This document shows, piece by piece, positions 7,091-41,579 of a DNA stretch of 64,000 nt. A program made the translations under genes and the position numbers. Numbering within the stretch: position 1 is the first letter of the stretch; every line of letters begins with the position of its first letter. A model generated the notes under the pieces. That model saw nothing but the letters and a program-made list of their open reading frames with translations. It was not told the DNA's origin and did not search any database. Origin of the DNA: Monocercomonoides exilis PA203 (Eukaryota; Protista; Preaxostyla); NCBI GenBank assembly GCA_001643675.2, contig LSRY02000027.1, positions 868,001-932,000 of the forward strand. The letters run 5' to 3'.

Positions 7091-7285
7091 TCAGATATTT
7101 TCTATTTAGATCTTTACCCTTTACTTTATCTTTCAAAAATCTCTTTTTTTCTGTATCTCAATTTAAAATACAGTAACGTTTTGCGCTCGTTGAAAAAACT
7201 TATCTTTATTTATTTGTATGCTTATATTTATAGTTAAATTTTTATTTAAGTATTGTTTATGAATATTTTTTCAGTGTTTACAATA
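7091..7285. promoter_or_regulatory. Probable bidirectional promoter between UTP6 and the TRPML-like gene
   Basis: 195 bp between divergent start codons (7090 on -, 7286 on +). Inferred from position only. Confidence 0.5.
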
Positions 7286-9557: not shown

Positions 9558-10329
9558 TGAATAGTCTGAAAAGGTATTTTTGCGTATTTTTTCAAAATTT
9601 CGAATTTTTTTTGTTTGGTTTAATAAATTTGTTAATTTTACGCTTAACTTTTCTTTACCAATTTTTTTGGTTTTCTTTATTTACAAAATTTAATTTATTC
9701 TTATTTGATGAGCGTTGATCACATTTTTGTTGAAAACAAAAATCTTTATATTCTTTTAATCCTTTTTTCCAAAAAATAAAAAAAGAAAGAAAAACTTCTT
9801 TATTTGGACAATTGTATTATTCATAGTGATACAGATAATTACTGAAAAAATTGAAAATAAACTTTTGCTTATTTTATATAGATCAATAAGTTCCCAGAAA
9901 AAACCAGTTGAAATTATTTGTTAAAGATAAAAGAAAGAAAATAATTCTAGTTAAAACAAATAAAAAAACATGTAATCAACAAAACGAAGATTTTGTTAAG
10001 CAAGAAGCTAATAAAAAGTCCTTTATTCAAAATATATGAATAACAAAAACAAATTTCGACTTTAAATAACATGAAAAAAAAAATAAAAAATTATATTTTA
10101 CAAGTAATCGGCAAGGAACTAGAAAATACAAACTGATTATAAAAAGACTCGCCGCTCATTAAAAAAATTCGAAAAGCTTAAAATTATCTTTAACAAAAAG
10201 CTAATAAATGAGAAAATCCCTTTGCTCTGACAAGATTGGATAACATTTAAAAAAATAAAAAATTTTGTTTATAAAAGCTAAAAGAAAATCTGAAAATGTT
10301 CAGTTTCCCCTTCAATGCTTGCACATTCT

Positions 10330-13300
10330 TTATTCAAGCTCGTCAATTAGCTCGCTAACTCTGTTTTCTCTAGCTTTTCTTAATTTTCTTTGCCTCTTTT
10401 TCTTTTTCTTTTTCCTTTTTTTCGACGTGCTATCTTGTTCAAAATCGACATCCCCTCCAAATTCATTTGCGTCTTCTGAAAAAACATCATTTTGGAACAG
10501 TTCATCTGTAAACAGTGCGTTGAAAAGGAAAGGATCCGATGTTATCATTGATTCAATATCAACTCCGTTTTCGATGTTGTTTGAAATTTCATTGGCATCA
10601 TCCATAAAAAGCTCGTTATCAGCAATGTTGTCAAATTCGCTCTTTCTTTCTCCCTCGTTAGTATTCCACTCTTCCTCATCTGCAGAAGGCTTTAACTCAT
10701 CGTCATTCCAAACAGAATCGAACATTGAAGACGCTAACATTTCATCAGAATCTCGATCGGTTGCACTTTCTGATGTTCTTGCGTATTCATAAGCATTCTC
10801 AAAGTTATCTGGTTGACGCATATCATCATTTGCTCCGTATTCTTCATCTGCAACAAACTCATCTAATTCTGAGTTTCGTTCAAAATCATTTTCATTCATC
10901 TGTGAAAGACCATCTGATTCAAGAATTGGCAGAGCTTGAACAACATTTTCAGAATGAGATTGGTCTGAAAAGACAAATGAATTTCTTTCAAGATCTCCAT
11001 CCATCTGGTCTTCTTCTTCCCCTTCCCAATCAATCATCTCTTCGTTTTCTTCAGTATCATATCTCATAAGATCTGACTCGGCATTCCTTTGAACAGCTGT
11101 TGATCGCCCATTCGGGCTTAACATTGTTCCGCTTGAAGCATTTTCTCTTTCTTCCAAGTCAATGGGAGTACCATATTCGTTATTTAGAGGTTCTTCATGT
11201 TGCTGAAATAGTTCATCACCATTAAAGGAAGGATAACCATCAGGAGCCTTGTTGAAGTTCGTTTCATTAAAATCATCGAATTCTTCTGATGAAGATGAAG
11301 CTGAAGCCGATGAAGCACGCTGTTTCGGAGTATTTCCTAGAATATTCTTGCTCAATGGATTTTTTGTTGTTTCAACAAATGAACTGTCTTGCATGGTACT
11401 TCTGATCGAGGTATTTTTCTTTTTGGAAAAAGTTGAACGATAAGTAGATTCAGTATCTGTTGGAGGACGCTTGTTCGGAGTAACCTGCGCTGTTGGAAGT
11501 GCGCCTGATGGATTGGAAGAAGAAGAAGAAGAAGAAGAAGCACCCACATCCACCACAATTCTCACTTGATCGTTTGACTCAACTTTGTTAGAATCTGAAT
11601 GCCTTCGCCTCCGTTCTTTCGCTTTTCTCGGTGAAGTTTGACTGGCTCTTGCACGTTCAGTTTCATTTTCTGTTCTGTTGTCTTCTGGCTGGCTTATGTC
11701 TTGGCTTTGTTTATTATTATTGGTCTTTCTTTTCTTTATCCATACGATTATAATGATTAGAGTTATTAAAGCAAGAAGGAACAAAACTCCAGCTAAAATT
11801 GGCAGCCAAATCATCTGTGACCCTTTTGAAACAGAATCATTTCCAGAAGAGGCATTTGGATCGTTGCTTCCATTGACAATTGGATCAGGCGATACAGCAA
11901 CTGTATTCAAGAAAAATGACGCTGCTGTTTTAACCTCCTCATTTGGATTCCAGAAAAGGACTTTTAGATAAAAATCTACATTTGCTGCTTCAATCTCTGA
12001 TGGAAGAGAAGTAACTGCTTTGAAAAGATCTTCCTTTACTTCAATCCAAAATGTTGTCTCATTTTCGAAGTTTTCAATTGGCTGATTGATTGAAGAATAA
12101 AGAGTTTCATTATTTGCATATGAATCAATAGAAACAGTTAAATTACACGGAAAGAGTAATTCGCCTGTGAAAGTCATTCTAACAGTTGAAGATGAACGCG
12201 AAGGCATCTGTGAATTGGAGCGCGAAGAAATTGAAATATTACCGTTAGATGATTGTGTATAAATTATTTCTTTGTTTGATTTTTCCGTTGATTCCGACTG
12301 AACTGGTAAAGTCGAATTCGACAGATCAGATCGTTTCATGTATTTAAGCTTTGGAATGAACCAAAATTGTCCGTATTCCTTGTCCGTTGGGTGAGTGAAT
12401 TTGCATTTGCGACTCAGAATCCAATCTGAACTTACCGAAGGAGGATTTGTTACAGTTATATTTGCACCGAAGCACAAAATATCTCTTTGAAGAGATGAAA
12501 ATGAATTGCTTTTCTCACTGTTGAAATAGAATGTTGAGTTTTCAAGAAATGCTGAACTTTCGCTTATATAAAGAGCTCCATCTGGGGAAGATCTGAAAAT
12601 TGACGATGAAAAATGAGCCTCAGAGTCGTCCACGCTTATCATAGACTTATTCCACTGACAAACAGTATGAAGTTCATTGACAGAATTCCCAGGATTATTA
12701 CTTAACAAAGGACTTGCGTTTCCGGAATCTCTCAAAAGTTTATTGTTATTGGAGACAGAAGTGAATGAATTTGATAATGAAGTTGGTATTGGAACAGATG
12801 GCAGAAAGCTTCCAACAAACTGGGTATTTATTACATTTAACACTCCACCACTAATTCGAAAACTAGTTCCCAAATCACTTCCTCCTCTGGTCTGAATAAA
12901 TAAGCACTCATCAATCGTGCAAGCACATCCTTCACACAAGACAACACTTCCATTTTGAGAGCTTTCACATTCAACAGTATCAAATTTGGAAGCAGTTAAA
13001 TTTAGATGTGCAGTTCGAGAATTCCTTCCAATAACAGAAACAAGCGAATTAGCTTTTGCTGTAACATTGTTAATGATCATCGATAATAATGAACATTTAC
13101 TGGCTTCGCTGAGTGATAACATTCCCTTTTCAAAACCAACATCAAACAATTCAAAGTTATCTAAATGAAGAATACAGCTTACTCCAGACACAAGGAAAAA
13201 TGCCATAGTCGATTGACTTGATGACTCTGGTTCTCCGTTATTTAACGAAAGCGTACAATTAAACACTGTTAAATTTGAAGCAGAAACGATGAACAACGAA

Positions 13301-16300
13301 TCAGATCCATTTAATTCATTAAAACAATTTAAGGAGACAAATCTAAATTCTGTTGGACTAGTAACATTGAAATAGCTATTAATAATCATTTCGCCTCTTT
13401 CCTCCAAATTTTGAAGCTCTTTGTTCAATGCTCGATGGGACAATGCTGCTGGTAATTCAGAAGTTATAACATAATCACCAATGACAAAGTCAACTCTACG
13501 CGAAACGATACACCAATCTTTCAGATAAACTTTGTGCTTTCTACTTTGCCTATTTATAGCATGAACTATTTCTCCACATGGATATCCAGCGAACCCGCAA
13601 ACAGATCCATTGACACCTGTTTCTCCGCTTAAATAAATCCAATCAGGTGTGGAATCCAAACAATATTTCAAAGGAAGTGTTAGATTTTCTTCGTTCCTAT
13701 CCATTCCAATGTAATCTTCGTTGGTGCTTTCAGAAAACCGATCTGGACTGTAAAATGCAAATGTTGTTCTGTTAACAACACGCAAAAGACTGTTTGCAGA
13801 AATGAAAATGTTCCTTCCGTATTCAGCATTATTTGCAGTAAAATGAGGAGTACTTATAGAAAAGAGCGCTTGTTCATTTACTACAAATAAAGATACTCCT
13901 CCTCCCTTTCCATTTGATCCGCTGCTAAAAGGTGCCGTGCAAAATTCAAATGAATTATTCTCAAGCACAAACCCTATATGACTTGTGACATTCACAAATA
14001 AACCTCCTCCAGAGCTATCTCCCGAACTAAAATGCTCAGGTTTTTGTCCTGCTCCTAAAGTGTTAGTCACGGAGCAATTCGAAAAAAGGCAAGACAAAAT
14101 TCTAACCGATTGATCAGTTCTTGAATCTTCCTCGTTCCACGGTAAAGTGTTGCAAACATATAAACATCCTCCATGCGATTTTTTGTTCATAACTCTCGTG
14201 AAATTTGTGCGATTAAAACTGCATTTGCTCCATTCTTCAATTCCAATTAGAGAAGTATTTGTACAAACCACATCAGATATATTTGTGTTTTCGATATTTA
14301 ATTGTTTCACAGATACCACACGAATTAACTTATCGCTCAAATACAACGGGCAATTTGGTATAGAAAAGTTAGTTATGTTCACATTTGTATTCGCTCCATT
14401 TGCATCAATAAAGATTTTTTTAAGTGTAGCATACGATGAAATTTCATTTGATGATTTTGCTGTTAGAGCGATAAATGTCTGAGTGGTAGATAAGACTGTA
14501 AATGCGAATGAATCAATTTGAAGCGTTCCTTCACTGACAGAAATAAATTTTATTGGAACAACTTTATTTAAACTGACACCAAATTTGCATTCCTTTAATC
14601 TTGTTGTCCCACTTTTAACTGATATAAATGATGATGGCAATTCCTTGTTTGACAATACACTAAATATAATTCTGCTAATTGTTAATCTGTAAGAGCTAAT
14701 AATTGCAGATTGCGTTAAGGTGTGGTTTGACGGAAGTTCAAGCTTCACAGTATTGTTCAGCTCTGAAGGCATGAGTGCAAGTTCTCCCTCAGAAGGCTCA
14801 AACGATGATGTTATTGACAAATCGTCTTTGATGCCAACGATGGACTGATTGAGACGACGCTGGCTTGCACTGTGTCGAATTGTAGCACATGGGTAAAAAC
14901 TGAATCCGCATGCAGAATTATCATTTCCTGATTGAGAAACAAACACTGTCGTTGCATTCTGATCAATTAGATAATAAACAAGAGGAATTGAGTCAACGTT
15001 AACGAACTCATCAAATCCTTCCAATGAGAAATTTGAAGTTAATAAAACATCAGGATGACTATTTGTTACAAAAGGTAACGATTCCTTATGTATTGTCTGA
15101 GGTAAATTGAACGATGTGACAAATAAATCTCTTCCATAAACTGCTTTATTAACTTCTGCGTCATTCAAAGGAGGGAAGTAAGTTAATGATCCAATGGAAA
15201 ATAATTGATATGCCACAATTTCTGATTCTGTCTCTTGAGTCTCTTCTGTTTCTGCACCAGACCTGGTTTTGAGATTCAAATATATTGCTCCTCCTTTTCC
15301 TTTATAATCATTCTCATTTGTAACTGAACATCGCAAAAATCGACAATAATTCATCTTTAGACTGTCTTCTTCATAAAGGAAAGCAGAGATTGATCCTCCA
15401 TTGCATTTTCCAGATTCAGAATTTTGAGTTACGCTGCAATTTGTAAAATTCGATTTGGTTATTATTATAGTTTTTTGATCAGCTTCATTGAAAAATTCAT
15501 TGAAAGCATTTTTAACTGTCTTTAAAGCAGACATCTTGCTAAAATAATTGTTTTTGGTTGAATTATTTGAAGCTAAAATATTTGTTGAAGAACCATCAGA
15601 ACATTCAATTGAAATGCACGATCCATCTCCAAATGTTCGAGCAATGTTTTCAAATGAAGAATTTTCAATTGCAAACTCCCCGCTCTCTTCGATATATATC
15701 AAACTTGCATCGCTAAGTGCGATATTTGATAGCGATGATTGGCTTATCAATATTGAAGATTGGCCAGCCGAAGATAAAACTTGAATGAAAGAGCTTTTGT
15801 TCTCCATCAATATCTCGTTGACATTTATCTTTGTGAAAACAGCATTTGATGCAGATATGACGAAGAATGGGCGAGTAAAGGTTGGAGTCACAGCATTCAC
15901 AATAGAAAATATTGTTACATTCAAGCTACCACTTTCAACGTTTATCACAACCAAATTCAATTCGTTTTCGTCACCTGAATATGAAAATAAGCAATCTTCA
16001 AGCTTCAGATTCCCCTTTGATGAGAAAATGTTTAAAGTATCAGACGCTGCGTTTCCAAAATTGATGGAAATATTAGAGAAGCATAAGTTGCCATCGATGG
16101 AGATCACAGATTGAGAAATCACTTCAGGTTCTTCAGAAAGCTGAACAGAAAAGTCTGACATCGTTTCTTTATCAAATGAATGGACATTGACGTTCAAATC
16201 ATCTGAGACACTTAAAGCTTCTTTCAGAATAACACTTGAAATAACGCTAACATTTCCTAAGACTGTTAATGGGAGTGGATGGATCGCTCCGTTCAAATCA

Positions 16301-34300: not shown

Positions 34301-37300
34301 TTTGAAGGAGAATCTAAAAGAGTATATCGAGCTAATACAGCCGAGCCGTTGCATCCAATAGAATTTATGCGATTGAATTGCGTGGATGAAAAGGAGATAT
34401 TTGAAGATTCCTCAATGTCAATAAGTGCTTTTGCGGATAGTTCAGCGCAATTCAATGAAGTATCCTCAAATGAAACAAATGCAGAGTTTTTTATTGAAAT
34501 AAACGAGCAATTGAGAATGATTTTTGCTGTTGGATCGATTGCAAAGTCTTCTGGAACAAATGTAAATCTATACAAGCTTGTAAATCCTCCGCTTGCAACC
34601 AGAAAAGTTATAGAAAATGATGGATTTGTTCCTTGAGGCTTTAAAGTGCAATTTGATAGAGTTGTTGCAGAAGCACAAACTTCAAACAAACAAGAAGCAG
34701 AAGCAACGTTTGTAACCTTCAAATTCATTGACTCTATTGTCAGGGGGCTATTCGAAGTCACAATTGCAGTTTCAGCATTCATAGAATTCAAAGAAGCAAC
34801 GTCAAAAATAATGTTCATCTGCGCCGAAGGATTTGTTGGACTTGTGGTGATTTTAACTGACCCGCTATCAAACGTCAATGAATTGTGAATTGTTAATGAA
34901 GAGATAACTGCAATTTCTTTGTTCTCTGAAGTGACTCTGCTCAATGCCACTGGTAATGAGACGCAAGGAAGTTCAGAATGTCCGCATGGAACGGCATTCC
35001 AGCTTGCGCTGTTGTCAACAAATACCTTTTCTAGCTCTCCAAGATAAAAGAAAAGCGAAAAAGCAGGTCTGTCTGAAGAGTCCATCCCAACAGCATCGTT
35101 CAATCCCCAGCACTGTTCATACGAAAAGCCGGGAAGCATTTCGGCTTTCAATGAAGCGTTCAAAGAGGATGCAAAAACAAAAATGTTTGATCCAAATTGT
35201 GCGGCATTATCACTCCATAAAGCAGCAGATGTGGTGTTTTTAATTTCAAAAGTTGAATAATCGGCTGGAATTTCTAAATAAAGTCCTCCTCCTTTTCCTC
35301 CATTTGTGAATGCATCTTCATTTGAAAAAGCGCTTATTGTTTCACCCGCTGCGCACTTTGTCATTCCGCAATTAGAAAATTGCATTGACGATCCTGATTT
35401 AATTTTCAAATAAAGCGCTCCTCCACAAGTTTGAGGAGCAGAAGATGAACAGTTTGTAAAACTATTGTTGGACAGCAAAACATCTGATGACAGATTGCAA
35501 ACAAGAACGCTTGATTGTTTATTTTCGCTGCTTGTACGAGAAATTGAAGAAAAATTTGTGTTGCTGATTGAGATTGAAGATGAACTTTGGGAATCAATAA
35601 GTGAAGTACTCAGAAAAGAAGAAGAAAAATAGCTATTTGTAATTGAAAGAGAAGATGGCTCAGCCATTCTGATAAATGGAAAAGCTAAAGCATTTGTCTC
35701 ACTTGAGGCGGAATTTGAATAATTTAATGTGATTAAACTAACAGAAGATTCTGAAGAAACAGAAATAAAAGGGGCTTCCGTTGATCGCATATTGCTCAGA
35801 AATGATTGGATCCAATAAACAGCTGAAGGACCACCGACATCCAAAAAACTGCTGCCTCTCCAAGTCATATCAGAAAAATTGGCGTTTTCCAAACGAATTA
35901 TTCCATGAAGACAACTTGCAAATGCAAAATGAAACTGTGTATTTCCAGTTGAGACAATCGTGAAATTCAAAACTGTCAAAATAGCATCTTCCGTCATTGT
36001 CTGAAACAGCGAAGTTAAACTACCCAGTGTTGATGAAACTTTAAATTTGGATGAATATACCATAAACTCTGAGGAAATGGGAAGCATAGATGAATAAGAT
36101 GCAGAAGGAGTTGGATTTGAATAAATTTCAATAATTGATGAAGTTGAAGCTGAAGACAAAGAATTTATTTGCGATGGAAATACGTATGCCCCAGTAAATA
36201 CATAGCTTTCCTTCACAAAAATTTTACATCCGGACGAAGCTAGTAAACGGTTCCTTATTGCACCAGGAATATCGCGGCATGGAAATGCAGAACTTCCACA
36301 AGATGTATGCTCAAAGCCACCGTTGATGTATTTGCTGCTATTGGTTTCAAACGCAGTATCAGGGCCATCGATATACGCTTCTGCAGGATTTCTATTCGCA
36401 AGAACGGCTTGAAGAGATATCGGAATCTTGTCATTTCCTTCAAATCCAATAAAAAGATGATACAGCGATGTGTTGCTCATTTGCTCCTCCTGGATATCAC
36501 TGAATCTTCCTTTTTCGTAAAGTATTTCTGTCAAATTCGGACCCATCAAGAATACATTGCATCCGCTGAATGATGAGCATTCAGTGTAAGTGTTGCCCTG
36601 GAAGCTAAAGTTGTGAAGAGCGCTATCGTCAATTAAAGCAGCACAGCCACCAAACCCGTAAGTTGAAGGAGCTTTGCATTTCACGAAGCTGTTGGATATT
36701 AGCTCAAAAGTTTCCGTATTTTGTAAATTGGCATAAATAGCACCACCAAATGTTGATGTGCCGGTTGATGAGCAATTTGTGAAATGATTAAATTGCAGAG
36801 ATAGTTGATCGTTTGAATTGCGCATGCCAACATAATAAACAGCTGATCCGTTTCTGTTTGATTCAACATTCTCAAATGAACAACTGTCCATAAAGAAAGA
36901 ATTGCAATTGGTTATTTGGAGAAATGAAGATGAAATCATGGAAATGTTACTAATTGTGCATAAAGTGAGGCTAACATTTTCCGCATCATCTATTTGGATT
37001 AATGGAGATTGCGGTCCATTGCAGTTGTTGAAAGAAACAGCGTTTGCCGTAAATGCAGATTGAACACTGGATATTAATATGAAAGGTTTATCGCTCAACG
37101 ATGGTAATGTCGAAGAAAAATTACAGTTCGAAGTATACACTAAACCTCCATTTGCTTTCAGAAAAGAGTACTTTATGCCAAGTGGAGACGCAGTATTTGG
37201 AAGAGCACCATTTGCGTTAGCAATTTGGCAATATGCAAATGAAATTGCCCCCGCTGCGCAAAGAAATATGCAATCCTGAGATAAATCAGTTGGCAAACAG

Positions 37301-40300
37301 AAAAAAATTGTATCGATCAGTGTGCTCACATGTGTTTCAATACACGAACCAGCAGTGACAACTCCGTTTAAAGAAAAATTCAACATTTTATTGCTGGCAA
37401 TTCCGGTCATGCTCATTGATGTATCGGCTACGACAAATGGTGAACTTAGATTATATATCGAGTCGCCAAATTGGAAGCGAACATGATCTGTATCACTTCC
37501 AAAATAGTTAAGAGCAAATGTTATTGTGCTGCACGGAAGCTCAGTACTTCCACATCCAGCTATATCAACCCCACTTCGTGAAGATATGAACACAACACCA
37601 GTGTTTCCATTCAAAAATGGCTTTAAGTCAAGAATTTCATCTGTGTTTGGTTGCTCTACTCCTTGAAAGCCCTTTTCTTCAGTCCAGTTGAAATTGCCTT
37701 GGAATGAATTATTTGTGACGACATTGAATAATTTTTTCGACTCAATAAACACATTTTGGCCATGCTCTGCTCTGCACAATGCAAATGCATTATTAATAAG
37801 TTTAAAGGGAGAAATGGTTGTTAGGCACTTCAGATAAATTCCACCTCCTCTTCCTTTAGAGCCAGTTGATGTCTGAGTCTCACATTTAGAAAAAGAAGAT
37901 CCATTAACAATCATATCGTTGCCTTCATTCAGTGAAAAATATGAAGAACCTCCGCAGCATTGAGAGGCTGTTACTGAACACTCAACAAACGAGCATTGCT
38001 CAATCACAGAAGTGTACAAAGGAGTGCGTACGCTTATCGCACCGCCAGAACTAACTGTTTGTGTTATGTTTATAAAAGTCACCAACTGCAAAGTTAATGT
38101 GGCTCCTTCAACAGAAAAAAGCGGCTGTTCATTGGCAGCAGTGTTGGATATCGTTGAATTCACCCACGTCAACGAGGCTCTTTCTTTCGCAACAGCAAGC
38201 CAAGTGCCTGCAGCAGGACTCGACGATTGAGAATATACAAATGAAAACGAAGACACTGAAAGTGATGCTCCGTTGCTGCCTTCAATGAGTGGATTTCTCA
38301 GAGAACGCAGAAGCGGGGCAGTGCAATCAAAAATGTGGAGCAAACCTCCTGTCGCATAAAAAAGGCGCGTCATAAATGGAGACGATGGATCAGAAGCAGA
38401 CAAAGTGCACTGCTCAAATGAAAGCGATCCAGATGACGTGCGACACAAAAACAGACTCTCGTAATTCGGTGAAATGACGATCGAAGGGATTGAAATGGAT
38501 GCACTTAGAAAAATTACAGTTGTTTCTACAATAACAGCTGCTGTAAGAGATGAATTGGTGTTTGTGTGTGTAGTAAAAGAAGGAGTACGCGAAGATGTCG
38601 GGGAAGATTTGATTAACCAGGAGCTGGTTCGCAGAGTGAGCTGTGTTGTGAAGTCAAAATTATTCAATGAAATGCGTTTTTGCGAGAACGAAAAAAAAGA
38701 AGAAGAAGCTAAAAAAGTTGCACATGGAATATCTTCCAAGCCGCAGATATTGCTGTCTTTGCCGTCATCAGAGCTAACCACCACAAAGTCTGGCATATCT
38801 CTGAAAAACAGCTGAATCGGATAACAAGAATCGTCTCCTGTTTCATCGCTCCACAGCATCGACTCAACCTGCGGGTCAGTCGCCATGTTTGCAGCAAACG
38901 AAGCCTGAGCTGACAATCTTGTTAGTCCAGGAGCCTCAACAAACAGCTTCTGCGCTTTGAATGCGGTGCATGATGCAAAAGGATGCGCTCCCATAAACCA
39001 AAACTGAGAGCTTGTTGGAGAGCAACGCAGAGCAACTCCACCACCCATTCTTTGAAACGATGACAGATCTCCAGCGCCACACGATGAGAAAGTCGAAAGC
39101 GTGGAGTTTACCAAGAATTCAGCAGATGACTGCGAAATATAAGCATAAACAGCACCGCCAAAGCCATTTGTTGTTTTTGCATTGAGGATAGACGAGTTTA
39201 TGAATTTTAACGATGAAGTCGATTGACCTAAAATTGCTTCTACAAATGAACCATTTCCTGCTGTTCTCGTTATATCTGAGGCAATCGTTCCATTTGCAAA
39301 CTGAAATTGAGAAGCACCACTAAGTCTGATTGCAGCTTGATCGGTGAGATTAACTTGCGAAATTTCACAGCCTGAAGTGTTGACAGATCCTCCATTAAGA
39401 TCAAAGATAGGGCAGCTTTGCATTGAAAAATGTGAGATTGTAGAGCGATCAAAATTAACTTTCCCACCTTTCAAAGTAATAAGCGGATACAATAACTGAG
39501 ATTCGCTGTTGGTGATGAATGCACACAGTATGAAATTGATTGTTCCAGTTGATGATCCTTCCAAGTCAAGCACAGAACGCGATGAAGCGCTCTGTGAAAT
39601 CGCAAGCTCCGATAGCTGAACAGTTTTTGAAAAGCTTCCTGTTATAAGCCCTTTGCTTACAACAACTGGATTGGCAGATGTCGATTCGGTTTTTCGGATA
39701 GAAACATTCGAGCCAGTAAAAATCCAACCTTGTTCTTCGGAAAACGTTTCATTTGGAAGAACAATCACATTCCTTGCAGCAGTTGTAAGCGATGCAGCAT
39801 AAGCGATTGTCAAGCAAGGGAACAACGAAAGATAACCACAAAACTGGCTATTGCTTCCATTTGAGGCATAGACAAGTATTTCTGACTGCTGATGAGCATC
39901 ATCTGGCTCGATAAGCACTGAAGAAATAGTCGCAGTTCCAATTTGGAAACGCGGCTGTGGGCTGACCGAGCGGCAATGTGTAAAAACGGACTCTTCTCCA
40001 TACACCAAGAGCCAGTTGTTGGATAAGAAGACGTCTGTGGCCCCAGAAGCACCAGCAGAGCCTGATGCGGAATTTTGAACGAATATGTTTTCACTTAAAA
40101 AAATAAGAGGAGATGAAGCTGTATTTTCTGGATAGTCAGAAAAGAAGATAGATCCTTTGCCATTTGAAGTTGAGCACTGATAAAAAATTAATGAAGAGAT
40201 GGAAACTGTGCCGTAGGTACCTGTAACAGCAATTGCACTTCCATGGCTCTGAGATGTTGCATTCTGAATGACGCATTCTTCAATTATCGACCCAGCAAGA

Positions 40301-41400
40301 GGACTCTCTGAAAAGACAGCACCTCCCATTGCATCGCTTGAAGACGATCGAGCAGAGCAGTTTATAAAGGTGCAATTCCTTATTGAAATTTGGCTGCTTT
40401 GCGGAACTAAAATTGCTCCTCCAGATCCATCTGCTGCTGTGCAGTTAATAAATTGGCATGCATTAAATATATTTGAATTCTGTGTTGAAGAATATATCTC
40501 ATTGGCGTTCAAAATTTTTCTGTTATTGAAAAAAGAAGATTGGATTATAACTTTTTTCTCCGATTCTATAACCCTAGAGGATTGAATAGAATTGTTGAAA
40601 AATGATGAATTCACTGTAAGACTTGATAAAGAAATAATGCTGCCATATATAAAATTATCAGCATTAAAAGCTTCGCAATGTTGAAATTTCACTTCGGAAA
40701 AATAACTAATTTCTTTGAAAGAAGCACCAACATTAGAGATATCCGTTTTTGCTTGCGTAATGTTTAAAAATGTCATAAAGCTCAGAGAAAAAGAAGAAGA
40801 TGCACTTTTTGTGAAAAGAGAATGAGAAGACGAAAGATGAAAGTTTGAAACACAAAATTTTGTTGCAGATATTCTTCCATTGGAAGAATAAGACAGAATA
40901 CTCTCTGTCAAAACAAAGAAAGGATGTTCAAAAGCAAATGATATATTTCTTAAATTGAGGTTCCCTTGCGCAGTGAAAAGTGGAGGTATTTTGGCATCAA
41001 GATAATGAAAAATGCAATCCTGAATCAAGCACGAAGAAGAATGTGCAATAAAAATCAATGACAAATCGTCCCTTCCTTGAAAATGTAAAAGCGAAAGTGT
41101 TGCCGATGAATTATAAAGATATATTAACATTTTATTTTCTAAAACAAAATGCTCTTTTAATAATGATTTATTTGATGAGCTTGAGTTCGTCAATAATTTC
41201 AGATAATTTTCCGAATCGACAGCAGGTTGAAACATTTTATTTTCAATTTTGCAATGTGTAATAATTGGTATGTTTTTTGTAATTGGAGATATAATTGTTG
41301 CTCGATGTTCTGAAACATCAGGATTCAAAAAGCAAAAAACTCCTCGAAAAACATGTAATAATACAAATAATGCAATTATATCCAAATGGTTTAGCCGCAT
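10330..41400 (-). CDS. Giant single-exon type I membrane protein (~10,356 aa) with 20 Cys-capped parallel beta-helix-like (Pmp/pectin-lyase-like) modules
   Basis: Uninterrupted 31-kb ORF. First ATG at 41400 gives signal-like MRLNHLDIIALFVLLHVFRGVFC. Repeated GxDxxxCGxxxxPC, FxxC...GG[A/G][I/V/L] and NxAxxGR[D/N]xF motifs. One TM helix (IWLPILAGVLFLLALITLIIIIVWI, ~11738-11812) followed by KKRK, then a ~470-aa acidic tail. Confidence 0.92.
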   Translation of the reverse strand: MRLNHLDIIALFVLLHVFRGVFCFLNPDVSEHRATIISPITKNIPIITHCKIENKMFQPAVDSENYLKLLTNSSSSNKSLLKEHFVLENKMLIYLYNSSATLSLLHFQGRDDLSLIFIAHSSSCLIQDCIFHYLDAKIPPLFTAQGNLNLRNISFAFEHPFFVLTESILSYSSNGRISATKFCVSNFHLSSSHSLFTKSASSSFSLSFMTFLNITQAKTDISNVGASFKEISYFSEVKFQHCEAFNADNFIYGSIISLSSLTVNSSFFNNSIQSSRVIESEKKVIIQSSFFNNRKILNANEIYSSTQNSNIFNACQFINCTAADGSGGAILVPQSSQISIRNCTFINCSARSSSSDAMGGAVFSESPLAGSIIEECVIQNATSQSHGSAIAVTGTYGTVSISSLIFYQCSTSNGKGSIFFSDYPENTASSPLIFLSENIFVQNSASGSAGASGATDVFLSNNWLLVYGEESVFTHCRSVSPQPRFQIGTATISSVLIEPDDAHQQSEILVYASNGSNSQFCGYLSLFPCLTIAYAASLTTAARNVIVLPNETFSEEQGWIFTGSNVSIRKTESTSANPVVVSKGLITGSFSKTVQLSELAISQSASSRSVLDLEGSSTGTINFILCAFITNSESQLLYPLITLKGGKVNFDRSTISHFSMQSCPIFDLNGGSVNTSGCEISQVNLTDQAAIRLSGASQFQFANGTIASDITRTAGNGSFVEAILGQSTSSLKFINSSILNAKTTNGFGGAVYAYISQSSAEFLVNSTLSTFSSCGAGDLSSFQRMGGGVALRCSPTSSQFWFMGAHPFASCTAFKAQKLFVEAPGLTRLSAQASFAANMATDPQVESMLWSDETGDDSCYPIQLFFRDMPDFVVVSSDDGKDSNICGLEDIPCATFLASSSFFSFSQKRISLNNFDFTTQLTLRTSSWLIKSSPTSSRTPSFTTHTNTNSSLTAAVIVETTVIFLSASISIPSIVISPNYESLFLCRTSSGSLSFEQCTLSASDPSSPFMTRLFYATGGLLHIFDCTAPLLRSLRNPLIEGSNGASLSVSSFSFVYSQSSSPAAGTWLAVAKERASLTWVNSTISNTAANEQPLFSVEGATLTLQLVTFINITQTVSSGGAISVRTPLYTSVIEQCSFVECSVTASQCCGGSSYFSLNEGNDMIVNGSSFSKCETQTSTGSKGRGGGIYLKCLTTISPFKLINNAFALCRAEHGQNVFIESKKLFNVVTNNSFQGNFNWTEEKGFQGVEQPNTDEILDLKPFLNGNTGVVFISSRSGVDIAGCGSTELPCSTITFALNYFGSDTDHVRFQFGDSIYNLSSPFVVADTSMSMTGIASNKMLNFSLNGVVTAGSCIETHVSTLIDTIFFCLPTDLSQDCIFLCAAGAISFAYCQIANANGALPNTASPLGIKYSFLKANGGLVYTSNCNFSSTLPSLSDKPFILISSVQSAFTANAVSFNNCNGPQSPLIQIDDAENVSLTLCTISNISMISSSFLQITNCNSFFMDSCSFENVESNRNGSAVYYVGMRNSNDQLSLQFNHFTNCSSTGTSTFGGAIYANLQNTETFELISNSFVKCKAPSTYGFGGCAALIDDSALHNFSFQGNTYTECSSFSGCNVFLMGPNLTEILYEKGRFSDIQEEQMSNTSLYHLFIGFEGNDKIPISLQAVLANRNPAEAYIDGPDTAFETNSSKYINGGFEHTSCGSSAFPCRDIPGAIRNRLLASSGCKIFVKESYVFTGAYVFPSQINSLSSASTSSIIEIYSNPTPSASYSSMLPISSEFMVYSSKFKVSSTLGSLTSLFQTMTEDAILTVLNFTIVSTGNTQFHFAFASCLHGIIRLENANFSDMTWRGSSFLDVGGPSAVYWIQSFLSNMRSTEAPFISVSSESSVSLITLNYSNSASSETNALAFPFIRMAEPSSLSITNSYFSSSFLSTSLIDSQSSSSISISNTNFSSISRTSSENKQSSVLVCNLSSDVLLSNNSFTNCSSSAPQTCGGALYLKIKSGSSMQFSNCGMTKCAAGETISAFSNEDAFTNGGKGGGLYLEIPADYSTFEIKNTTSAALWSDNAAQFGSNIFVFASSLNASLKAEMLPGFSYEQCWGLNDAVGMDSSDRPAFSLFFYLGELEKVFVDNSASWNAVPCGHSELPCVSLPVALSRVTSENKEIAVISSLTIHNSLTFDSGSVKITTSPTNPSAQMNIIFDVASLNSMNAETAIVTSNSPLTIESMNLKVTNVASASCLFEVCASATTLSNCTLKPQGTNPSFSITFLVASGGFTSLYRFTFVPEDFAIDPTAKIILNCSFISIKNSAFVSFEDTSLNCAELSAKALIDIEESSNISFSSTQFNRINSIGCNGSAVLARYTLLDSPSKNFSFVNCSFAQCTSSGGGVSGGSVSFLLDSAVCAPILNNCTFVQCSAAVSDEGRGGGVFFRLTDENCGFKIYNFSLAQWNNNYAKYGKNIFIDALKLRNAISTTSFIGFFPIEWDQQGFECCENENSTNILPISNFLFDLSSVYVKFDGQDDQSCGVINNPCITIAQAFLHQDNETRSVKVIESITQASLLNYSSGSVSISGLSPSSYSLLTSNVTSFTEAEMYDVSIPWTFSSLIFAFTTDSTTLTAAIRITSASLDVSSCSLRTCTDSERFKFSFLYATGGTVSFNTFKYDFSAVSTNLLFDGVPFASIGGECHLNLIHTTFEMRPSSLSSFIMCSEQSSLDLQDTTFKNFTDLTASLVTLSTLSSISISNCTFESLVHTSGSLIETATSGSITIGTTVFQGIVNNEGNGSCLKCSAENGVIIIQNNTMRLSSCTTSNSCGGAMYVKLEGDLPSFNLNQNFIQQCKAKEDDGGKGGGLFLELSSTNTNFMLTNSSSNDWLDNKAEQGKHIFVASPSLLLSASTAHFSGFDYQNWLNEDFIGIDGDVTNIYVPLKYYFLPKPSGFYVSSTVTGAEDTTACGNIEYPCLTLFYSFSLQNDSLRKVVIFGKLNQKQKVAFSNNELQLTVSTPRDSLNIQQELEGDTSCIETSVPVTVDGLLFTVTSSRSLSSIFLVLESILTVSSCQLRPLDDESVPLNFSFACAIAGELCVSNFSFEHSPPYPQSPIICVPLFIANGTGILTMSASTILGRAASSESLILLFGRSASLTNVSFGYFESLSSSLLKCSNSTTVSFDGCSICDTVTSVQLDLLSFSECYVTIHNLTVSNVTLVNGAAISTLDCGSVTIDGCSFTSVKRNSLSGSCISSSSSNWKISITNNKFWKCSSSGSRSGGGAVFASLNDTAEWIMSGNNITMCTALSDDSTGKGGGVFLTLNSLEVKWKFLLNTNELSDNDASFGKDLFVTSTDLSASLTQENFWATERIPPLSVESMAGYTDGNETVAIPLVFFFSSISDYILVGKDGYNNDACGVSENISGVAVYYPCESLDYAFQRRNTETRKAKILEACNQVVALTSYTEGSVEITSSTEGDIAIINMLQTGISVTVEFEVKVPWTLSFIQFNFTSPSYYLTTLFLVSTSSLTLSTCSLKPKTDESSFNFSFITVQNGILMIEGFSIDLTDTLTSDPLFDAFPMIEITSGKATISSSSFEKRASNSVPLLKVPQSGQLILQNTKFQNYESLSQPLISVSGSGVASIYNNESDLISFKNIQSSACILSASDSSKLTLNGVDFNSIILQRSSTIESNSLGEFSMESCGFDLISLTDGNGSALNVIAKDGSTTISNNTFTYSCVKSAANCGGAIFCEVSSTTSVPSFTNNSFSSCSAPFIEGANGKGGAIFFLIDDRLCTFSLTVFETTILADNKAEHGNVLFIASPELRTTISADSAFVNFDKPNMDEYDYCGYDLPDMASVVPIKFYFSGSPLVFVSTSGTDSTACGSEEYPCASIAYLFNQQNGTNEKSAKIVQSVNQANELSYSEGTVTIQASQEDENVSLNINQQTESNSNIFVISVPWEIYSTTFSALSFSASLRSIFKVTSSSLKLVSCKLIPKDDSTALTFSFLSVLAGVVKVTGFSFVLNVSTSVMPLFEGSSMITVSAGDVTIESSSIKQRGSTDAPLISASGTGRIFLSSTSFYEFKSLTSPLISSSGSSMISFNQTDSGAVTFSDMDSLETSLIECCDLSNISLLCAVFSNISLSNFCPIEIRTRGTVNIAQCPFLSILRRSGKGSCLNAELDAGSNLVLDECFFSNCTVEGDNAEGGAVYCCMIDATASARFIANSFKDCAVPTTSGRGGAVMVVCSDANCFLAFENKTISGSSFKSNVFTGCSARNGHSIFISAPNLSTSITRNSFAFFSYYDTNKYPTVEEQWAWDRNDLVGVYYSNPTIFLSLGYFLMDQSEFILVQSNTLNGEDVSNCGIYDNPCATIPYAINRQTRSLNHHIARDSIKIMVDTSVLLKEEIVPDAFPFELKSKSEDNSTLTIVQIAALTASELESITPREELILFNNSASSFTGITFSIPSSLNNRLQLIKLTSNSLNMMNCKLTAQSSTSISYHFVTATDGSLHLTDFSMGSASFTGHIGSQSPSFGLASFINTVASTITVTLTDCSFKDVKMTESPFILGNEKVTLIAEGTLFDSFTVSGPTNVIELKATSSLILQSAEQSDGSAIQTAFRSINLQNGAVIRALNPSLLSITAAFEKNRRTTGYGSCIFMGDESLYELIAPDVYSPTENSVASIIHLFNSSFLTCQTLGRNSLGGSVCLLLQTGMMETKVEDTSFTNCSAPFEEGLNGKGGAIYLHLDQFSATWNIVTYNSDGIELFSENNAEFGSNLFVASYNIKSSVNSRRLVLSDESCPYVLEYQGYDKLDPSVVVVLCNYLRSLEDQIFVSEQSGNDDSSCGFPETPCKTLHQAVSRWEESTLAAESVVPDDTTVCTVTVMNNVVLAKQFVPSESYALLLAGKSITNQILRISSLEAAQTTGMITSNNNLAIKKLIIQLPQNLNASSFLQVGNGVAELSNCTIQAYENILNFVFMQLTRSSATLSEIVINPISQTQFDFIIVEATSSLSINKLNIRSSIFEETSFVSFSNQSSLICTESAFRSTNLTANPLFSSSGNNFVELSLCNFSMIQSTSSQGSVLFNKRKTTLSSSPTRKTFDSRKMNEDEDDSIIVANNTFITCTVSGASSCGGALSVECDSEPFALQIEDNSFKSCSASVDEMNGKGGAVALNFLKTYINWKLSTSQFPVAGLAGENIASIGRDVYIESINLTKSITIERFSDLDSSNLSVNFDKLSLICHENTFEDYWIPTLYYVIPFDFESVTLLVKPASYLQSLNANNIQNSDKRNGPSDFIDEMEEKTYAFTVAYASIDGNPTSACGFSEYPCSSINQAVIRGQSNALTSEVGWMKASNAEDTTNVAVKVKTNVRVGDACNVLVDKLMIISNSVKLCTLYLNFASEGSDNTVFHNEKSLFFGRVNFEVENLPSSAVIIRQSDNILNLTTCSINSSSNTISNTFVEGIDGTIIINDFSIKQQSVTSCFVNLTEGAFSFTTKFTFLLSSFDSAQSFFSVATAKSAIFDSFTITNSSFNNTIVSLLPNDLNEAQQFLSLQSFQCSYNSFTGNNPVISLGSGTRAKISSSRFSNSSVESSFISQIQTDTLELDDVTFFQFTLSGISLITSSYATALSVNNSRFMSVKSSSSCGGCFSFEEGDGISLENLCSVSISNSLFYSCNIQFGENIATNGKGGGVAAQLKQGTTFVIKSSNFSQCIAPYNVVDANGRGGAIFIECVTSSIDWLLEELIFPASDDGNANQAKCGRNVFIVSSNLLQTITKERFALDLSDVLNECSSFLLRSYEGCYKNDEDLILPLQYYLTERDFVIDGEGEETKKILMTYVSQEGVDTETCGFICYPCQSLNAAVDRVVSFEGADAKYINVTVVGNASIISAYTNPMIEFTFHSSSAEHLSNAAVSVPAESSDAFAFSNSHAMSFVRMCICIESLPQDAVCIRQAGGHLTFKESSLSASINSVTNDFIQITGGSLDIENFFVSPSVLIQPTLRRKQDNNDVFAFTNASFLSADGNGIIIEIENLTVQSVAVESERFFISLKNECQFSISNSSFNKIEAASSIFLLNSSDSVAFENALFSSMKIIDSAVINSINSSELLINGCNFTDIQRQAGNGSCINLNEGSRQEGSSSSVLIKNSTFRNCSVSDDEGILVEGCGGAIYAQLNLGCSVLIDGQCSFVNCSTPFSSLNAKGLGGAIFLYLLSADASWKVESALFSDDEALHNKALFGRDLFVASPNLTISITPERLSCEASKAALLENPRLFDHSAVQGFDGEDILNPIPLRYYLLDFETRNISFIEGDSESEVVVGYVSIYGVSTSACGYENYSCNTLQWMEERLISSVDASKPVLEVINESVVIDEEFSSKFDKLKIEKNSLNEKFVLQAEQIEQGSQKGVIFNSKVLFISGISFCVPCSFPVHQSFIYQESGELYLSFGELLLSDPSTPISYPILNLIGGSAYITTFEIKPYAILPDIPLNEVKFNDTSFIVADGENAICTVKELTVANTVISGITPFLYSTNKSSLTLSNLTFANVSNFAAELLCIDGSEASSLSNLILNNLTTNGDKPLISLNTQNSLTLSSSSLSTITSAYAPILSITGAQDLSITDVNLSFINQNLKAAISIMSTIGDISIEKVKFSNVTRNASDGSCIYVKHGDSTNESSINSAISNLQLGNCSFENCCIDSESSSNSGGAVFMEIYTEIQFDISNSTFTACIAQETDEQPSFGGALFLKFGICSSDWKITTSNFPSLDDLLKNYATFGRDLFVSSINLTETITDSTLPDIQPDNYWFDHSSLEGFNNNVEPSIPLRYFIIHFPKQAISFSDSDFEEEEEEVPVGYVSSKGIDTVACGFVNYTCETIHWIEQRIINTTTSAKAIIVVNETVVLQKEYSSLLDSLSILPDTTKSYSHLIFADSEEGSLKGLISNQKVISISSVSLCTPSSLLNHETLFLQLEGKLTIKNSNIIPVESDSTLSYPLFIVTGGSLTVSDFEIVPVLPLSSDEVHQESIYLRIMNSLQHQKNQDSSPPAIQINKSSLLLINGTGKTSLTRMAVKELQLADENPSLFIQNGASISFESCIFDGISFPASSLLSTTTGELIIESSSFSNMNCISSPLITSETSRSFSMTNSNFTNIARESGDGTCLHFEEGDLPESSLAGIEKTVAISDCNFTNCCIKNSLNENNEGRGGSIFARLRTGVSWTFDNSSITHSSAPYGSSSSKGKGGGIMIYAVESALDWKINPISFPELGHSDQNQAFSGRDIFISSPELNATVTKLSFIWDTWDYQQSYRFDHSSMEGYNEHNSECVIPLPYYLYQLHPTIYVSTPLGFDSTACGFDNYTCQTLPWAIWRQTGNDEAVEGDVTVNSTVIVKEEYQIITKSLNINSNESQSQIIVQNGVDQALDAILLNKKILSFTNIDFFLPQSVDQHQSFIHNKAEGTISINNSHLIAFDVSHELQYPFLIIESGSATIESFFVEPYLSATDAIENPNELNISINSSSLMIVKGEATSLSIENSSFSSIHLIGSNAFISIMESASFAIANSNVTHMTKVSCSFVELNEPRNCEIESIFVEEINATGESAFINIIDCVDLTLQNSNFSRIRATSSSFIDITRCKNGSISLLSLENCELTTASTISVSNANGKLSLIDCTFKHIKRYSSDGSCLSFNEIESVRYSSKRNEEGDIENYCEIAEDSIVIKVESCHFEDCCVLKAEEAEKDAVGGALYCLMNHDLSFIVNCSTFIACTAPSREDKNEQGCGGGIHLKLSESDSNWIVASPIFPNRDESDFVEKQNKARFGRDLFVYSPDLTESVQKCRLDPIEIPESPLSFDWSSLCGFDRFNETIAIPILFYLMNAKFQSSTQILLSPSGVDTSACGFFVEYPCQTVPFSIANRFYEGKAFSIINEILFDECFHNTQENVNIKSNEDNEKANLVFRIPSSLDSFNGIFEISGSTTLELLALCIPSSLSTLSSVIYLKSSSLTLSDCTLIPFERNHTFSGTLICVSGGTLHLNTFVIDRSQFATELPQFTNANTSLNKTVFNSAIVFKLISANDSNPSANVHSLIVFNTTFSASSKLFEVKEKCTLFLNDFQISDCVVSSSEEDAGIIWCDTGGSTTLNRCSALSVKSNNSAILNVRWGSEITVIDCTFTSINRNYTRGAAICIQEPHEASNQAESADSETSDYQNRYVIRNCSFEDCSITPPWNTVYLRGDGSAIYAHLQSFSPIASQSKLNNSDEVVLLISNCSFTKCVSPSNESDETKGFGGGVFLNFADASVPWSMSDIIYPKREEENFDTDKNVASFGRDLFISSPSLSESVDYSTKLCFADLSYEADASSLEGRNGHSSTEQVPLVFLLLLLNESVFVTSNGCDSIGCGFKSFPCCSLRYAIERQKDELLKRDAKIADLNGAIHPLPLTVLGNVSVISSVILKEALSVSDDLNVNVHSFDKETMSDFSVQLSEEPEVISQSVISIDGNLCFSNISINFGNAASDTLNIFSSKGNLKLEDCLFSYSGDENELNLVVINVESGSLNVTIFSIVNAVTPTFTRPFFVISASNAVFTKINVNEILMENKSSFIQVLSSAGQSSILISQSSLSNIALSDASLIYIEESGEFAIENSSFENIARTFGDGSCISIECSDGSSTNILASNNSTKNNYFSKMSALKTVKNAFNEFFNEADQKTIIITKSNFTNCSVTQNSESGKCNGGSISAFLYEEDSLKMNYCRFLRCSVTNENDYKGKGGAIYLNLKTRSGAETEETQETESEIVAYQLFSIGSLTYFPPLNDAEVNKAVYGRDLFVTSFNLPQTIHKESLPFVTNSHPDVLLTSNFSLEGFDEFVNVDSIPLVYYLIDQNATTVFVSQSGNDNSACGFSFYPCATIRHSASQRRLNQSIVGIKDDLSITSSFEPSEGELALMPSELNNTVKLELPSNHTLTQSAIISSYRLTISRIIFSVLSNKELPSSFISVKSGTTRLKECKFGVSLNKVVPIKFISVSEGTLQIDSFAFTVLSTTQTFIALTAKSSNEISSYATLKKIFIDANGANTNVNITNFSIPNCPLYLSDKLIRVVSVKQLNIENTNISDVVCTNTSLIGIEEWSKCSFNRTNFTRVMNKKSHGGCLYVCNTLPWNEEDSRTDQSVRILSCLFSNCSVTNTLGAGQKPEHFSSGDSSGGGLFVNVTSHIGFVLENNSFEFCTAPFSSGSNGKGGGVSLFVVNEQALFSISTPHFTANNAEYGRNIFISANSLLRVVNRTTFAFYSPDRFSESTNEDYIGMDRNEENLTLPLKYCLDSTPDWIYLSGETGVNGSVCGFAGYPCGEIVHAINRQSRKHKVYLKDWCIVSRRVDFVIGDYVITSELPAALSHRALNKELQNLEERGEMIINSYFNVTSPTEFRFVSLNCFNELNGSDSLFIVSASNLTVFNCTLSLNNGEPESSSQSTMAFFLVSGVSCILHLDNFELFDVGFEKGMLSLSEASKCSLLSMIINNVTAKANSLVSVIGRNSRTAHLNLTASKFDTVECESSQNGSVVLCEGCACTIDECLFIQTRGGSDLGTSFRISGGVLNVINTQFVGSFLPSVPIPTSLSNSFTSVSNNNKLLRDSGNASPLLSNNPGNSVNELHTVCQWNKSMISVDDSEAHFSSSIFRSSPDGALYISESSAFLENSTFYFNSEKSNSFSSLQRDILCFGANITVTNPPSVSSDWILSRKCKFTHPTDKEYGQFWFIPKLKYMKRSDLSNSTLPVQSESTEKSNKEIIYTQSSNGNISISSRSNSQMPSRSSSTVRMTFTGELLFPCNLTVSIDSYANNETLYSSINQPIENFENETTFWIEVKEDLFKAVTSLPSEIEAANVDFYLKVLFWNPNEEVKTAASFFLNTVAVSPDPIVNGSNDPNASSGNDSVSKGSQMIWLPILAGVLFLLALITLIIIIVWIKKRKTNNNKQSQDISQPEDNRTENETERARASQTSPRKAKERRRRHSDSNKVESNDQVRIVVDVGASSSSSSSSNPSGALPTAQVTPNKRPPTDTESTYRSTFSKKKNTSIRSTMQDSSFVETTKNPLSKNILGNTPKQRASSASASSSSEEFDDFNETNFNKAPDGYPSFNGDELFQQHEEPLNNEYGTPIDLEERENASSGTMLSPNGRSTAVQRNAESDLMRYDTEENEEMIDWEGEEEDQMDGDLERNSFVFSDQSHSENVVQALPILESDGLSQMNENDFERNSELDEFVADEEYGANDDMRQPDNFENAYEYARTSESATDRDSDEMLASSMFDSVWNDDELKPSADEEEWNTNEGERKSEFDNIADNELFMDDANEISNNIENGVDIESMITSDPFLFNALFTDELFQNDVFSEDANEFGGDVDFEQDSTSKKRKKKKKKRQRKLRKARENRVSELIDELE

Positions 41401-41579
41401 TAATATTTTGAATATTGTGCTAAAACCGTTTGAATAAAACAACAGAATAATAGATAATTATGGTTCAAAAAATAAGTTTTCGAAAATACAATCTGAATGA
41501 ACAAAAGAAAAACAAAATTTTTTTCTTTTATCCAATATTTTAATGAGGATTGTTAAATGTCGTCTAATTGGATTTTATT

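Follow-up and report, generated by a model that had tools for sequence, protein, structure and literature searches.

In the window analysed here, a stretch of 64,000 nucleotides (nt) of the oxymonad Monocercomonoides exilis PA203 (assembly GCA_001643675.2, contig LSRY02000027.1, positions 868,001 to 932,000 of the forward strand), an expressed single-exon gene on the minus strand (10330-41400, in window coordinates, as throughout) encodes a protein of 10,356 amino acids (aa). This giant protein is a type I membrane protein made up of a signal peptide, 21 domains predicted to be beta-helices, one transmembrane helix and a 470-aa acidic tail, and by sequence comparison it falls into a very large family of oxymonad surface proteins built from beta-helix modules, within which it belongs to a small "mega" branch that is kinase-less. 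M. exilis is a gut protist that serves as a model eukaryote without mitochondria and that is not culturable without bacteria.

The gene occupies an open reading frame (ORF) that runs uninterrupted for 10,370 codons from stop to stop (10330..41442, minus strand), for which the probability of a stop-free frame by chance, given the base composition, is about 1e-308; each of the five remaining frames contains 322-811 stops. From the first ATG (41400), the ORF listing and its translation give 10,356 codons ending with the last sense codon (10333..41400), followed by the stop codon (10330-10332), all on the minus strand like the features below. The product has a mass of 1.125 MDa and a pI of 4.6, in agreement with a first-pass annotation of this DNA, which had announced a protein of about 10,350 aa and more than 1 MDa with a signal peptide and one transmembrane helix. 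Indeed, the N-terminus (MRLNHLDIIALFVLLHVFRGVFC, 41332..41400) resembles a signal peptide by inspection, and hydropathy places a single transmembrane helix at aa 9864-9886 (11743..11811). The ectodomain between them carries 217 NxS/T sequons and 283 cysteines, and serine accounts for 15.4% of the protein. The cytoplasmic tail (470 aa, 10333..11742) is of low complexity and apparently disordered; its net charge is -48, and a polybasic cluster, KKRKKKKKKRQRK, lies close to the C-terminal end. A 490-aa C-terminal piece yielded no Pfam domain and no PK_Tyr_Ser-Thr or Pkinase match, the only Pfam match in the last 1,089 aa was a weak one to DUF6479, with no autotransporter beta-barrel, and blastp found no similarity between the tail and those of the paralogues described below. 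Nor were endocytic motifs (DxF, DPF, FxDxF, NPxY, YxxPhi and di-Leu) clearly enriched in the tail, DxF being marginal.

Twenty capped modules of 365-606 aa, delimited by cap search, blastp, MAFFT alignment and profile search, fill aa 509-9861 (11818..39876), with module starts at 39876, 38781, 37590, 36336, 35022, 33873, 32595, 31257, 29865, 28434, 26994, 25566, 23991, 22557, 20979, 19533, 17916, 16425, 14946 and 13635. The first-pass annotation had listed 20 caps, all of which were recovered with the pattern C[GSA]x3-7[PTSAYF]C; their Cys codons lie at 39840, 38745, 37554, 36300, 34986, 33837, 32559, 31221, 29829, 28398, 26958, 25530, 23955, 22521, 20943, 19497, 17880, 16389, 14910 and 13599, which is 3-5 nt from where each had been placed. 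The eighth cap carries an inserted loop, CGVSENISGVAVYYPC. In these 20 modules the cap, of the form GxDxxxCGxxxxPC, stands on the N-terminal side, and two Pmp-like GGA coils lie towards the C-terminal end. Used as a profile, the 20 modules further reveal a degenerate module 0, devoid of the Cys cap and with two GGA motifs, at aa 40-482 (39955..41283; independent E-value 1.2e-8, profile positions 41-350), so that the earlier count of 20 holds for the capped modules and the total rises to 21. Since this capless twenty-first module lies at the N-terminus, the ectodomain consists of modules throughout, and according to the profile search they adjoin without linkers up to aa ~9837.

Cut at their caps, the 20 modules are 21-34% identical to one another, mostly over their full length, in an all-against-all blastp comparison. 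The MAFFT consensus of their C-terminal part, FxxCS..GGAxY..SFxxCxAP..GxGGG..NxAxxGxxxF, reproduces the signature noted at first reading. GGA[ILV] occurs 21 times against 0.4 in shuffled sequences (maximum 4), and GG[AGS][ILVMF] 42 times against 2.5, most modules having two. For FxxN there is no enrichment (47 observed, 49.9 expected), its position being held by FxNC or FxxC. Among the 47 columns conserved at 60% or more, nearly all are Gly, Cys, Phe, Leu, Ala or Pro, and the only polar or charged ones are D9, R298 and N418.

We modelled module 10 (26995-28434) with AlphaFold2, the other 19 modules serving as the alignment, and obtained a model that is almost all strand, with a mean predicted local distance difference test (pLDDT) score of 82.9 and a predicted template modelling (pTM) score of 0.86. 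An exhaustive structural comparison with 48,161 representatives of the PDB (VIA-align) gave as the best match the Vibrio lyase RbmB (9ozd; Z 23.1, 305 aa aligned, 3.0 A), followed by the Bordetella autotransporter passenger Vag8 (Z 23.0), AlgE4 (Z 22.1) and the pneumococcal adhesin PfbA (Z 21.4); 152 chains reached Z>=8, and every chain among the matches listed is a right-handed parallel beta-helix. Foldseek against the PDB likewise ranked only beta-helices for module 10, with weak E-values and TM-scores. In the ESM Atlas, the nearest clusters by shape were Chlam_PMP "adhesin-like proteins" of methanogens and NosD-type proteins (TM-score 0.61-0.66), and the nearest by language-model features were a Preaxostyla cluster, then bacterial DUF1565/Chlam_PMP/Beta_helix clusters (0.94). 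By sequence, a PDB search with the module profile gave no match at E<=1, the NCBIfam scan of the modules gave chance matches only, and DUF1565 had no match in the modules at E<=1. Pfam Beta_helix (PF13229) reached at best 22.2 bits (E 1.2e-4), in one stretch, below its gathering threshold of 25.9 bits, and matched one of the 20 modules at E<=1.

A two-module model of modules 9 and 10 (26995..29865), built on an alignment of non-overlapping module pairs, had a pLDDT of 78.2 and a pTM of 0.62, compared with 0.86 for the single module. Within it, module 9 matched Vag8 (7akv) with a Z of 24.3 (364 aa aligned, 3.8 A), and module 10 separately matched a beta-helix hydrolase. Because the two modules match solved helices separately, each module would form a beta-helix domain of its own. 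The beta-helix modules proposed in the first-pass annotation are thus borne out by confident models of right-handed parallel beta-helices for modules 9 and 10 (Z 23-24), and we predict from these two that the modules generally adopt this pectin-lyase-like fold.

The gene is transcribed at both ends. We compared two stretches, 31401-41400 and 7001-13000, with four metatranscriptome runs of one study (2024), plausibly the study of M. exilis in polyxenic culture (PMC12308965). In the first stretch, the 5' third of the gene, 97-99% of sampled words were present in the four runs. In the second, RNA contigs cover the gene from 9971-10216 through the stop codon, the tail and the transmembrane helix into module 20, without joints and with zero base differences between 9971/10216 and 13000, and thereby delineate a 3' untranslated region (9971..10329; contig ends at 9971-10216 depending on the run). 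The matching contigs measure up to 7.7 kb, break only at a simple repeat (11508-11553) and, judging by their length, extend 2.5-6.3 kb past 13000. These contigs derive from RNA rather than DNA, because a 139-nt GT..AG intron (8252-8390) of the neighbouring plus-strand gene is removed in all four runs and because the intergenic stretch is empty, coverage being zero from ~9540 to 9810-10216. Contig depth, a poor measure, is at least as high for the giant gene as for this neighbour. No intron was seen in the compared stretches, and the earlier description of the gene as intron-less is in keeping with the lack of splice joints there.

Scanning the 82.3-Mb genome (101 contigs) with the module profile, which scored 96 candidates out of 7,598, revealed at least 48 distinct loci with matches. 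In the mega branch, the open frames of these loci measure 16,665, 9,080, 8,211, 8,137 and 5,036 aa, and among the other loci many frames are ~4,100 or ~2,550 aa long. A search of 1.84 billion cluster representatives with the same profile retrieved 3,143 proteins at E<1e-3, 343 of them at E<1e-30; the giant protein itself is not among the listed matches of this search. A word-indexed protein search with the module alignment or with modules 14-15 came back blank, and at ~25% identity few shared 5-residue words are expected. We sampled the names of 30 of the top 150 matches: 28 belong to M. exilis or Blattamonas nauphoetae and two are metagenome proteins. The first-pass annotation was right in its guess of an oxymonad as the source of the DNA. 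The M. exilis relatives are annotated as "hypothetical" or "putative protein tyrosine and serine/threonine kinase", and those of B. nauphoetae as "adhesin-like", "protein kinase domain-containing" or "trimeric autotransporter adhesin".

Many family members have a transmembrane helix followed by a tail of ~420 aa, and PK_Tyr_Ser-Thr is detected at E 2e-9 to 2e-13 in the tails of P0012, P0007 and P0026 (M. exilis MONOS_4951 and MONOS_1060, and Blattamonas BLNAU_19569), the first two of which score E 1e-239 (12 stretches) and E 2e-260 with the module profile. These three tails match the C-lobe of the kinase only (profile positions ~97/156-257 of 258), and none of 150 relatives showed a catalytic loop when searched with a regular expression for the HRD motif, which is consistent with the kinase-like tails being pseudokinases. 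From these searches, a kinase-like tail appears typical of the family, and Pfam kinase profiles find nothing in the tails of the giant protein or of its giant paralogues P0001-P0003. Papers on the M. exilis genome report tyrosine-kinase-like proteins as the largest gene family, with 332 genes, and contain nothing on an ectodomain, beta-helices or giant genes (PMC6759080, PMC8767320, PMC10703272).

The giant gene is not the largest of its kind in the genome. A paralogue on another contig (C36; G000:C36:143903-193882, plus strand) has a frame of 16,665 codons, corresponding to 16,659 aa from the first Met, and follows the same plan, with a signal-peptide-like start, ~35 modules (40 profile stretches), one transmembrane helix and a tail of ~410 aa with a polybasic cluster. 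The two genes share a tract of 1,577 nt that is 86.4% identical by blastn (19114..20689, encoding aa 6904-7429 in modules 15-16, against G000:C36:183694-185269). Its edges are sharp and lie inside modules 15 and 16, and outside it no blastn similarity connects the two genes, so that gene conversion between chromosomes is the likely origin of the tract. Over its 525 codons, dS (synonymous divergence) is 0.44, dN (nonsynonymous divergence) is 0.087 and dN/dS is 0.20, which is direct evidence for purifying selection on the protein. Such selection had been presumed from the length of the open frame alone and is now measured, on this one segment. Some internal modules of the C36 paralogue are near-identical (e.g., aa 5834/7674 and 6263/8103), pointing to recent internal duplication in that gene, unlike in the giant gene of the window.

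How the array evolved was approached with a tree of 79 full-length modules from the giant protein, the C36 paralogue and five relatives (two further M. exilis giants, one kinase-tailed M. exilis member and two Blattamonas proteins). The modules of the giant protein are scattered over the tree, where their label needs 16 changes for 16 rows, as in shuffles, and they pair with modules of paralogues. Best-hit mapping places modules 10-16 and 19-20 in order on positions 11,011-15,936 of the C36 paralogue, and modules 0-4 and 20 in order on P0001. Since module order is partly shared with paralogues, the array is older than the gene duplications. Judging from these comparisons, the modules have been kept distinct by position and were not homogenised, except in the one tract of gene conversion. 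The transmembrane helix and a long tail were kept in all mega-paralogues examined.

What could such a protein do? We consider it reasonably probable that it acts as an adhesin, a prey-capture fibre or a component of the surface coat, and that it probably binds sugars on bacteria or host surfaces. The first-pass annotation had suggested an adhesin, a receptor or part of the glycocalyx, and a role of this kind is still an inference. The ectodomain would form a heavily glycosylated chain that projects from the plasma membrane and that, if extended, may measure ~100-150 nm, an estimate based not on the models but on ~6-7 nm per module, the usual length for beta-helices of this size. The faces of the beta-helices would bind glycans or other surface ligands, and prey bacteria or host mucus might thus be bound by the chain as by an adhesin or a capture fibre, unless the chain is chiefly a major constituent of the surface coat. 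The non-enzymatic members of the beta-helix fold are adhesins, among them PfbA, Vag8, pertactin and the polymorphic membrane proteins (Pmps). In addition, the conserved residues of the modules are nearly all structural (Gly, Cys, Phe, Leu, Ala), which makes binding likelier than catalysis. M. exilis, which is kept in polyxenic culture, feeds on bacteria that it takes up by phagocytosis (PMC12308965).

Several points weigh against this proposal. The surface location, the glycosylation and the ligand are all predictions, and the signal peptide was judged from the N-terminus by eye. The tail displays no recognisable sorting or signalling motif. No solved helix spans both modules of the two-module model at a sensible root-mean-square deviation, so that the rod picture and its length are guesses. 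Finally, one continuous 31-kb transcript is presumptive, as assembled contigs cannot show a single molecule.

Other explanations have to be set beside this one. Given that the best structural matches include the RbmB lyase, PL6 alginate lyases, the AlgE4 epimerase and the depolymerase tailspikes of phages, and that M. exilis breaks down wall polymers of both bacteria and fungi (PMC12308965), some or all modules might be polysaccharide lyases, hydrolases or epimerases, forming a surface-anchored poly-enzyme that acts on capsule, mucin or plant polysaccharide. However, no constellation of acidic or basic residues (Asp, Lys, Arg, His) is conserved across the modules, no CAZy-type Pfam family matches any module at E<=1, and equally good structural matches (Vag8, PfbA and pertactin) are not enzymes; we therefore regard a poly-enzyme as unlikely, with the nuance that single modules could carry private active sites. 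The kinase-like tails of typical family members raise another prospect, namely that the giant protein is a signalling receptor that has no kinase: a ligand or shear would lead to cleavage, and the acidic tail, with its polybasic end reminiscent of a nuclear localisation signal, would be released or would recruit partners, the protein thus acting as a co-receptor or decoy alongside its relatives with pseudokinase tails. The giant protein and its 16,659-aa paralogue indeed both have a polybasic cluster close to the C-terminal end (shuffle P 0.01 and 0.03), but such a stretch near the membrane could simply bind acidic lipids, the tail has neither a domain, nor conservation with the paralogue tails, nor an enriched motif, and neither a cleavage site nor a protease partner is known. 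We give this receptor a small chance, marginally better than that of the poly-enzyme.

About as improbable as the poly-enzyme, in our estimation, is that the protein is shed or secreted as a component of a matrix, a coat or a cyst wall and that its transmembrane helix serves for delivery only. Its extreme length and its richness in serine (15.4%) and in sequons recall mucin-type coat proteins, and the RNA contig depth, poor measure as it is, at least equals that of the neighbouring gene; yet nothing speaks specifically in favour of shedding, and the retention of the transmembrane helix and the long tail in all mega-paralogues examined argues that anchoring matters. As for the possibility that there is no working gene at all, but an artefact of the assembly, a pseudogene in decay or several genes read as one, only the unusual size and the decayed family fragment found 2.4 kb upstream would suggest it. 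The absence of a stop in 10,370 codons (~1e-308), the dN/dS of 0.20 and the RNA contigs of up to 7.7 kb with zero differences tell against it, and modules that are at most 34% identical make collapse or expansion of repeats impossible, so that the view of the first-pass annotation, that the modules are too diverged for an assembly artefact, stands. On the open frame, the module divergence, the RNA match and dN/dS, we rejected the artefact and the pseudogene and hold this explanation to be extremely improbable. Within the preferred reading of an adhesin, capture fibre or coat component, a bolder version, which we put forward as speculative and rather doubtful, is that the mega-proteins (10,356-16,659 aa) are capture fibres or an outer coat of more than 100 nm in which 21-35 non-interchangeable lectin domains are each tuned to a different bacterial or host glycan, the paralogues occasionally swapping modules by gene conversion. 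If true, this would represent a eukaryotic multi-lectin system for recognising prey and host, based on a fold known above all from the adhesins of bacteria and the tailspikes of phages.

The surroundings of the gene contain another trace of the family. A stop-broken fragment of the module family lies at 43866-45677 (minus strand), 2.4 kb upstream of the giant gene and on the same strand, in three pieces that match profile positions 9-241, 316-433 plus 2-51, and 90-140 (E 1e-6 to 1e-15). An extension of the giant gene at its 5' end into this fragment was considered and rejected, being broken by stops. On the other side, the convergent neighbouring gene (7253-9557, plus strand) has a weak match to a Polycystin cation channel (PF08016, E 0.002, below threshold), and one RNA run hints at a further intron of 59 nt (7216-7274). 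Beyond it, a 625-aa ORF (4842-6719, minus strand) has sub-threshold matches to HAT repeats of the PRP39, Suf and Syf1 types, and its product is probably an RNA-processing factor.

Neither the beta-helix fold nor the motifs are new, nor is the general notion that a metamonad may carry a Pmp-like surface protein. The literature searched mentions the family only in entries named "hypothetical" or "tyrosine kinase-like", with no description of the ectodomain. Nor does it describe a tandem array in which 21-35 beta-helix domains are separately capped, a mega branch that lacks the kinase, or the way in which this branch evolved. For a eukaryote of any kind, an expressed 1.1-MDa protein of 21 discrete predicted beta-helix domains, with siblings as long as 16,659 aa, has an unusual architecture. 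In oxymonads, the mega-proteins are concrete candidates for the recognition of prey or host, and they offer a natural system in which to study the upkeep of very long arrays of diverged repeats, through positional conservation, purifying selection and occasional gene conversion.

The closest known relatives are the kinase-tailed proteins of oxymonads, which share homologous modules with the CG....PC cap and the succession of signal peptide, module array and one transmembrane helix, in the same organisms. The giant protein differs from them by the lack of a kinase-like tail, by three to four times more modules and by its place in a separate branch of mega-genes that share module order. Outside oxymonads, bacterial and archaeal "adhesin-like proteins" of the DUF1565/Beta_helix/Chlam_PMP type (e.g., in Methanobacteriota) and NosD resemble the modules by their N-terminal G.D...G....P..TI..A cap and by a single beta-helix of similar size, and they are the nearest ESM Atlas clusters. 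Their sequence similarity to the modules is not significant, and in this comparison the two-Cys cap and the 21-fold tandem array are specific to the oxymonad proteins.

The first-pass annotation had likened the modules to chlamydial Pmps, a reading that is upheld by the GGA motif and the fold and that fails for Pfam membership, FxxN enrichment and an autotransporter domain. Chlamydial Pmps are adhesins, and like the modules they combine a right-handed beta-helix with GGA[ILV] coils preceded ~12 residues earlier by an F-x-N/x-C motif. The giant protein is instead eukaryotic, has a transmembrane helix in place of a beta-barrel and only two Pmp-like coils per module. Pfam Chlam_PMP (PF02415) matches two of its 20 modules, at a best E of 0.015, below threshold; the similarity to Pmps is real but sub-threshold. 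Elsewhere in the genome, six loci exceed the Chlam_PMP threshold (24-25.6 versus 20.6 bits: G000:C36:2190711, C36:2274697, C36:1652127, C16:748272, C58:1402747 and C22:398994), each as a single repeat in an open frame of 1,244-4,138 aa. Their size suggests that they belong to the oxymonad module family; if they do, the link to Pmps would be above threshold there, though below it in the giant gene.

A further parallel comes from trichomonads, in which the expression of members of the Pmp-like type I proteins increases adhesion (Handrich et al. 2019, PMC6701047). These too are type I membrane proteins of an anaerobic metamonad: their beta-helix ectodomain contains GGA[ILV], a transmembrane helix at the C-terminal end stands where bacteria have the autotransporter barrel, and the cytoplasmic tail is acidic. 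They have one repeat region, whereas the giant protein has 21 separate domains, 20 of them capped. No trichomonad protein was found among the 30 relatives sampled by name, and of the motifs that mark the trichomonad proteins, ATPITK ahead of the transmembrane helix and NPx[YWF] along with an acidic cluster in the tail, the giant protein contains neither an ATPITK-like string nor, in its acidic tail, an NPx[YWF] motif. By analogy, the giant protein resembles a Pmp-type beta-helix adhesin with a type I anchor of the eukaryotic kind, a design shared with trichomonads, and oxymonads would become the second metamonad lineage, after trichomonads, in which Pmp-like beta-helices are carried by a eukaryotic membrane anchor.

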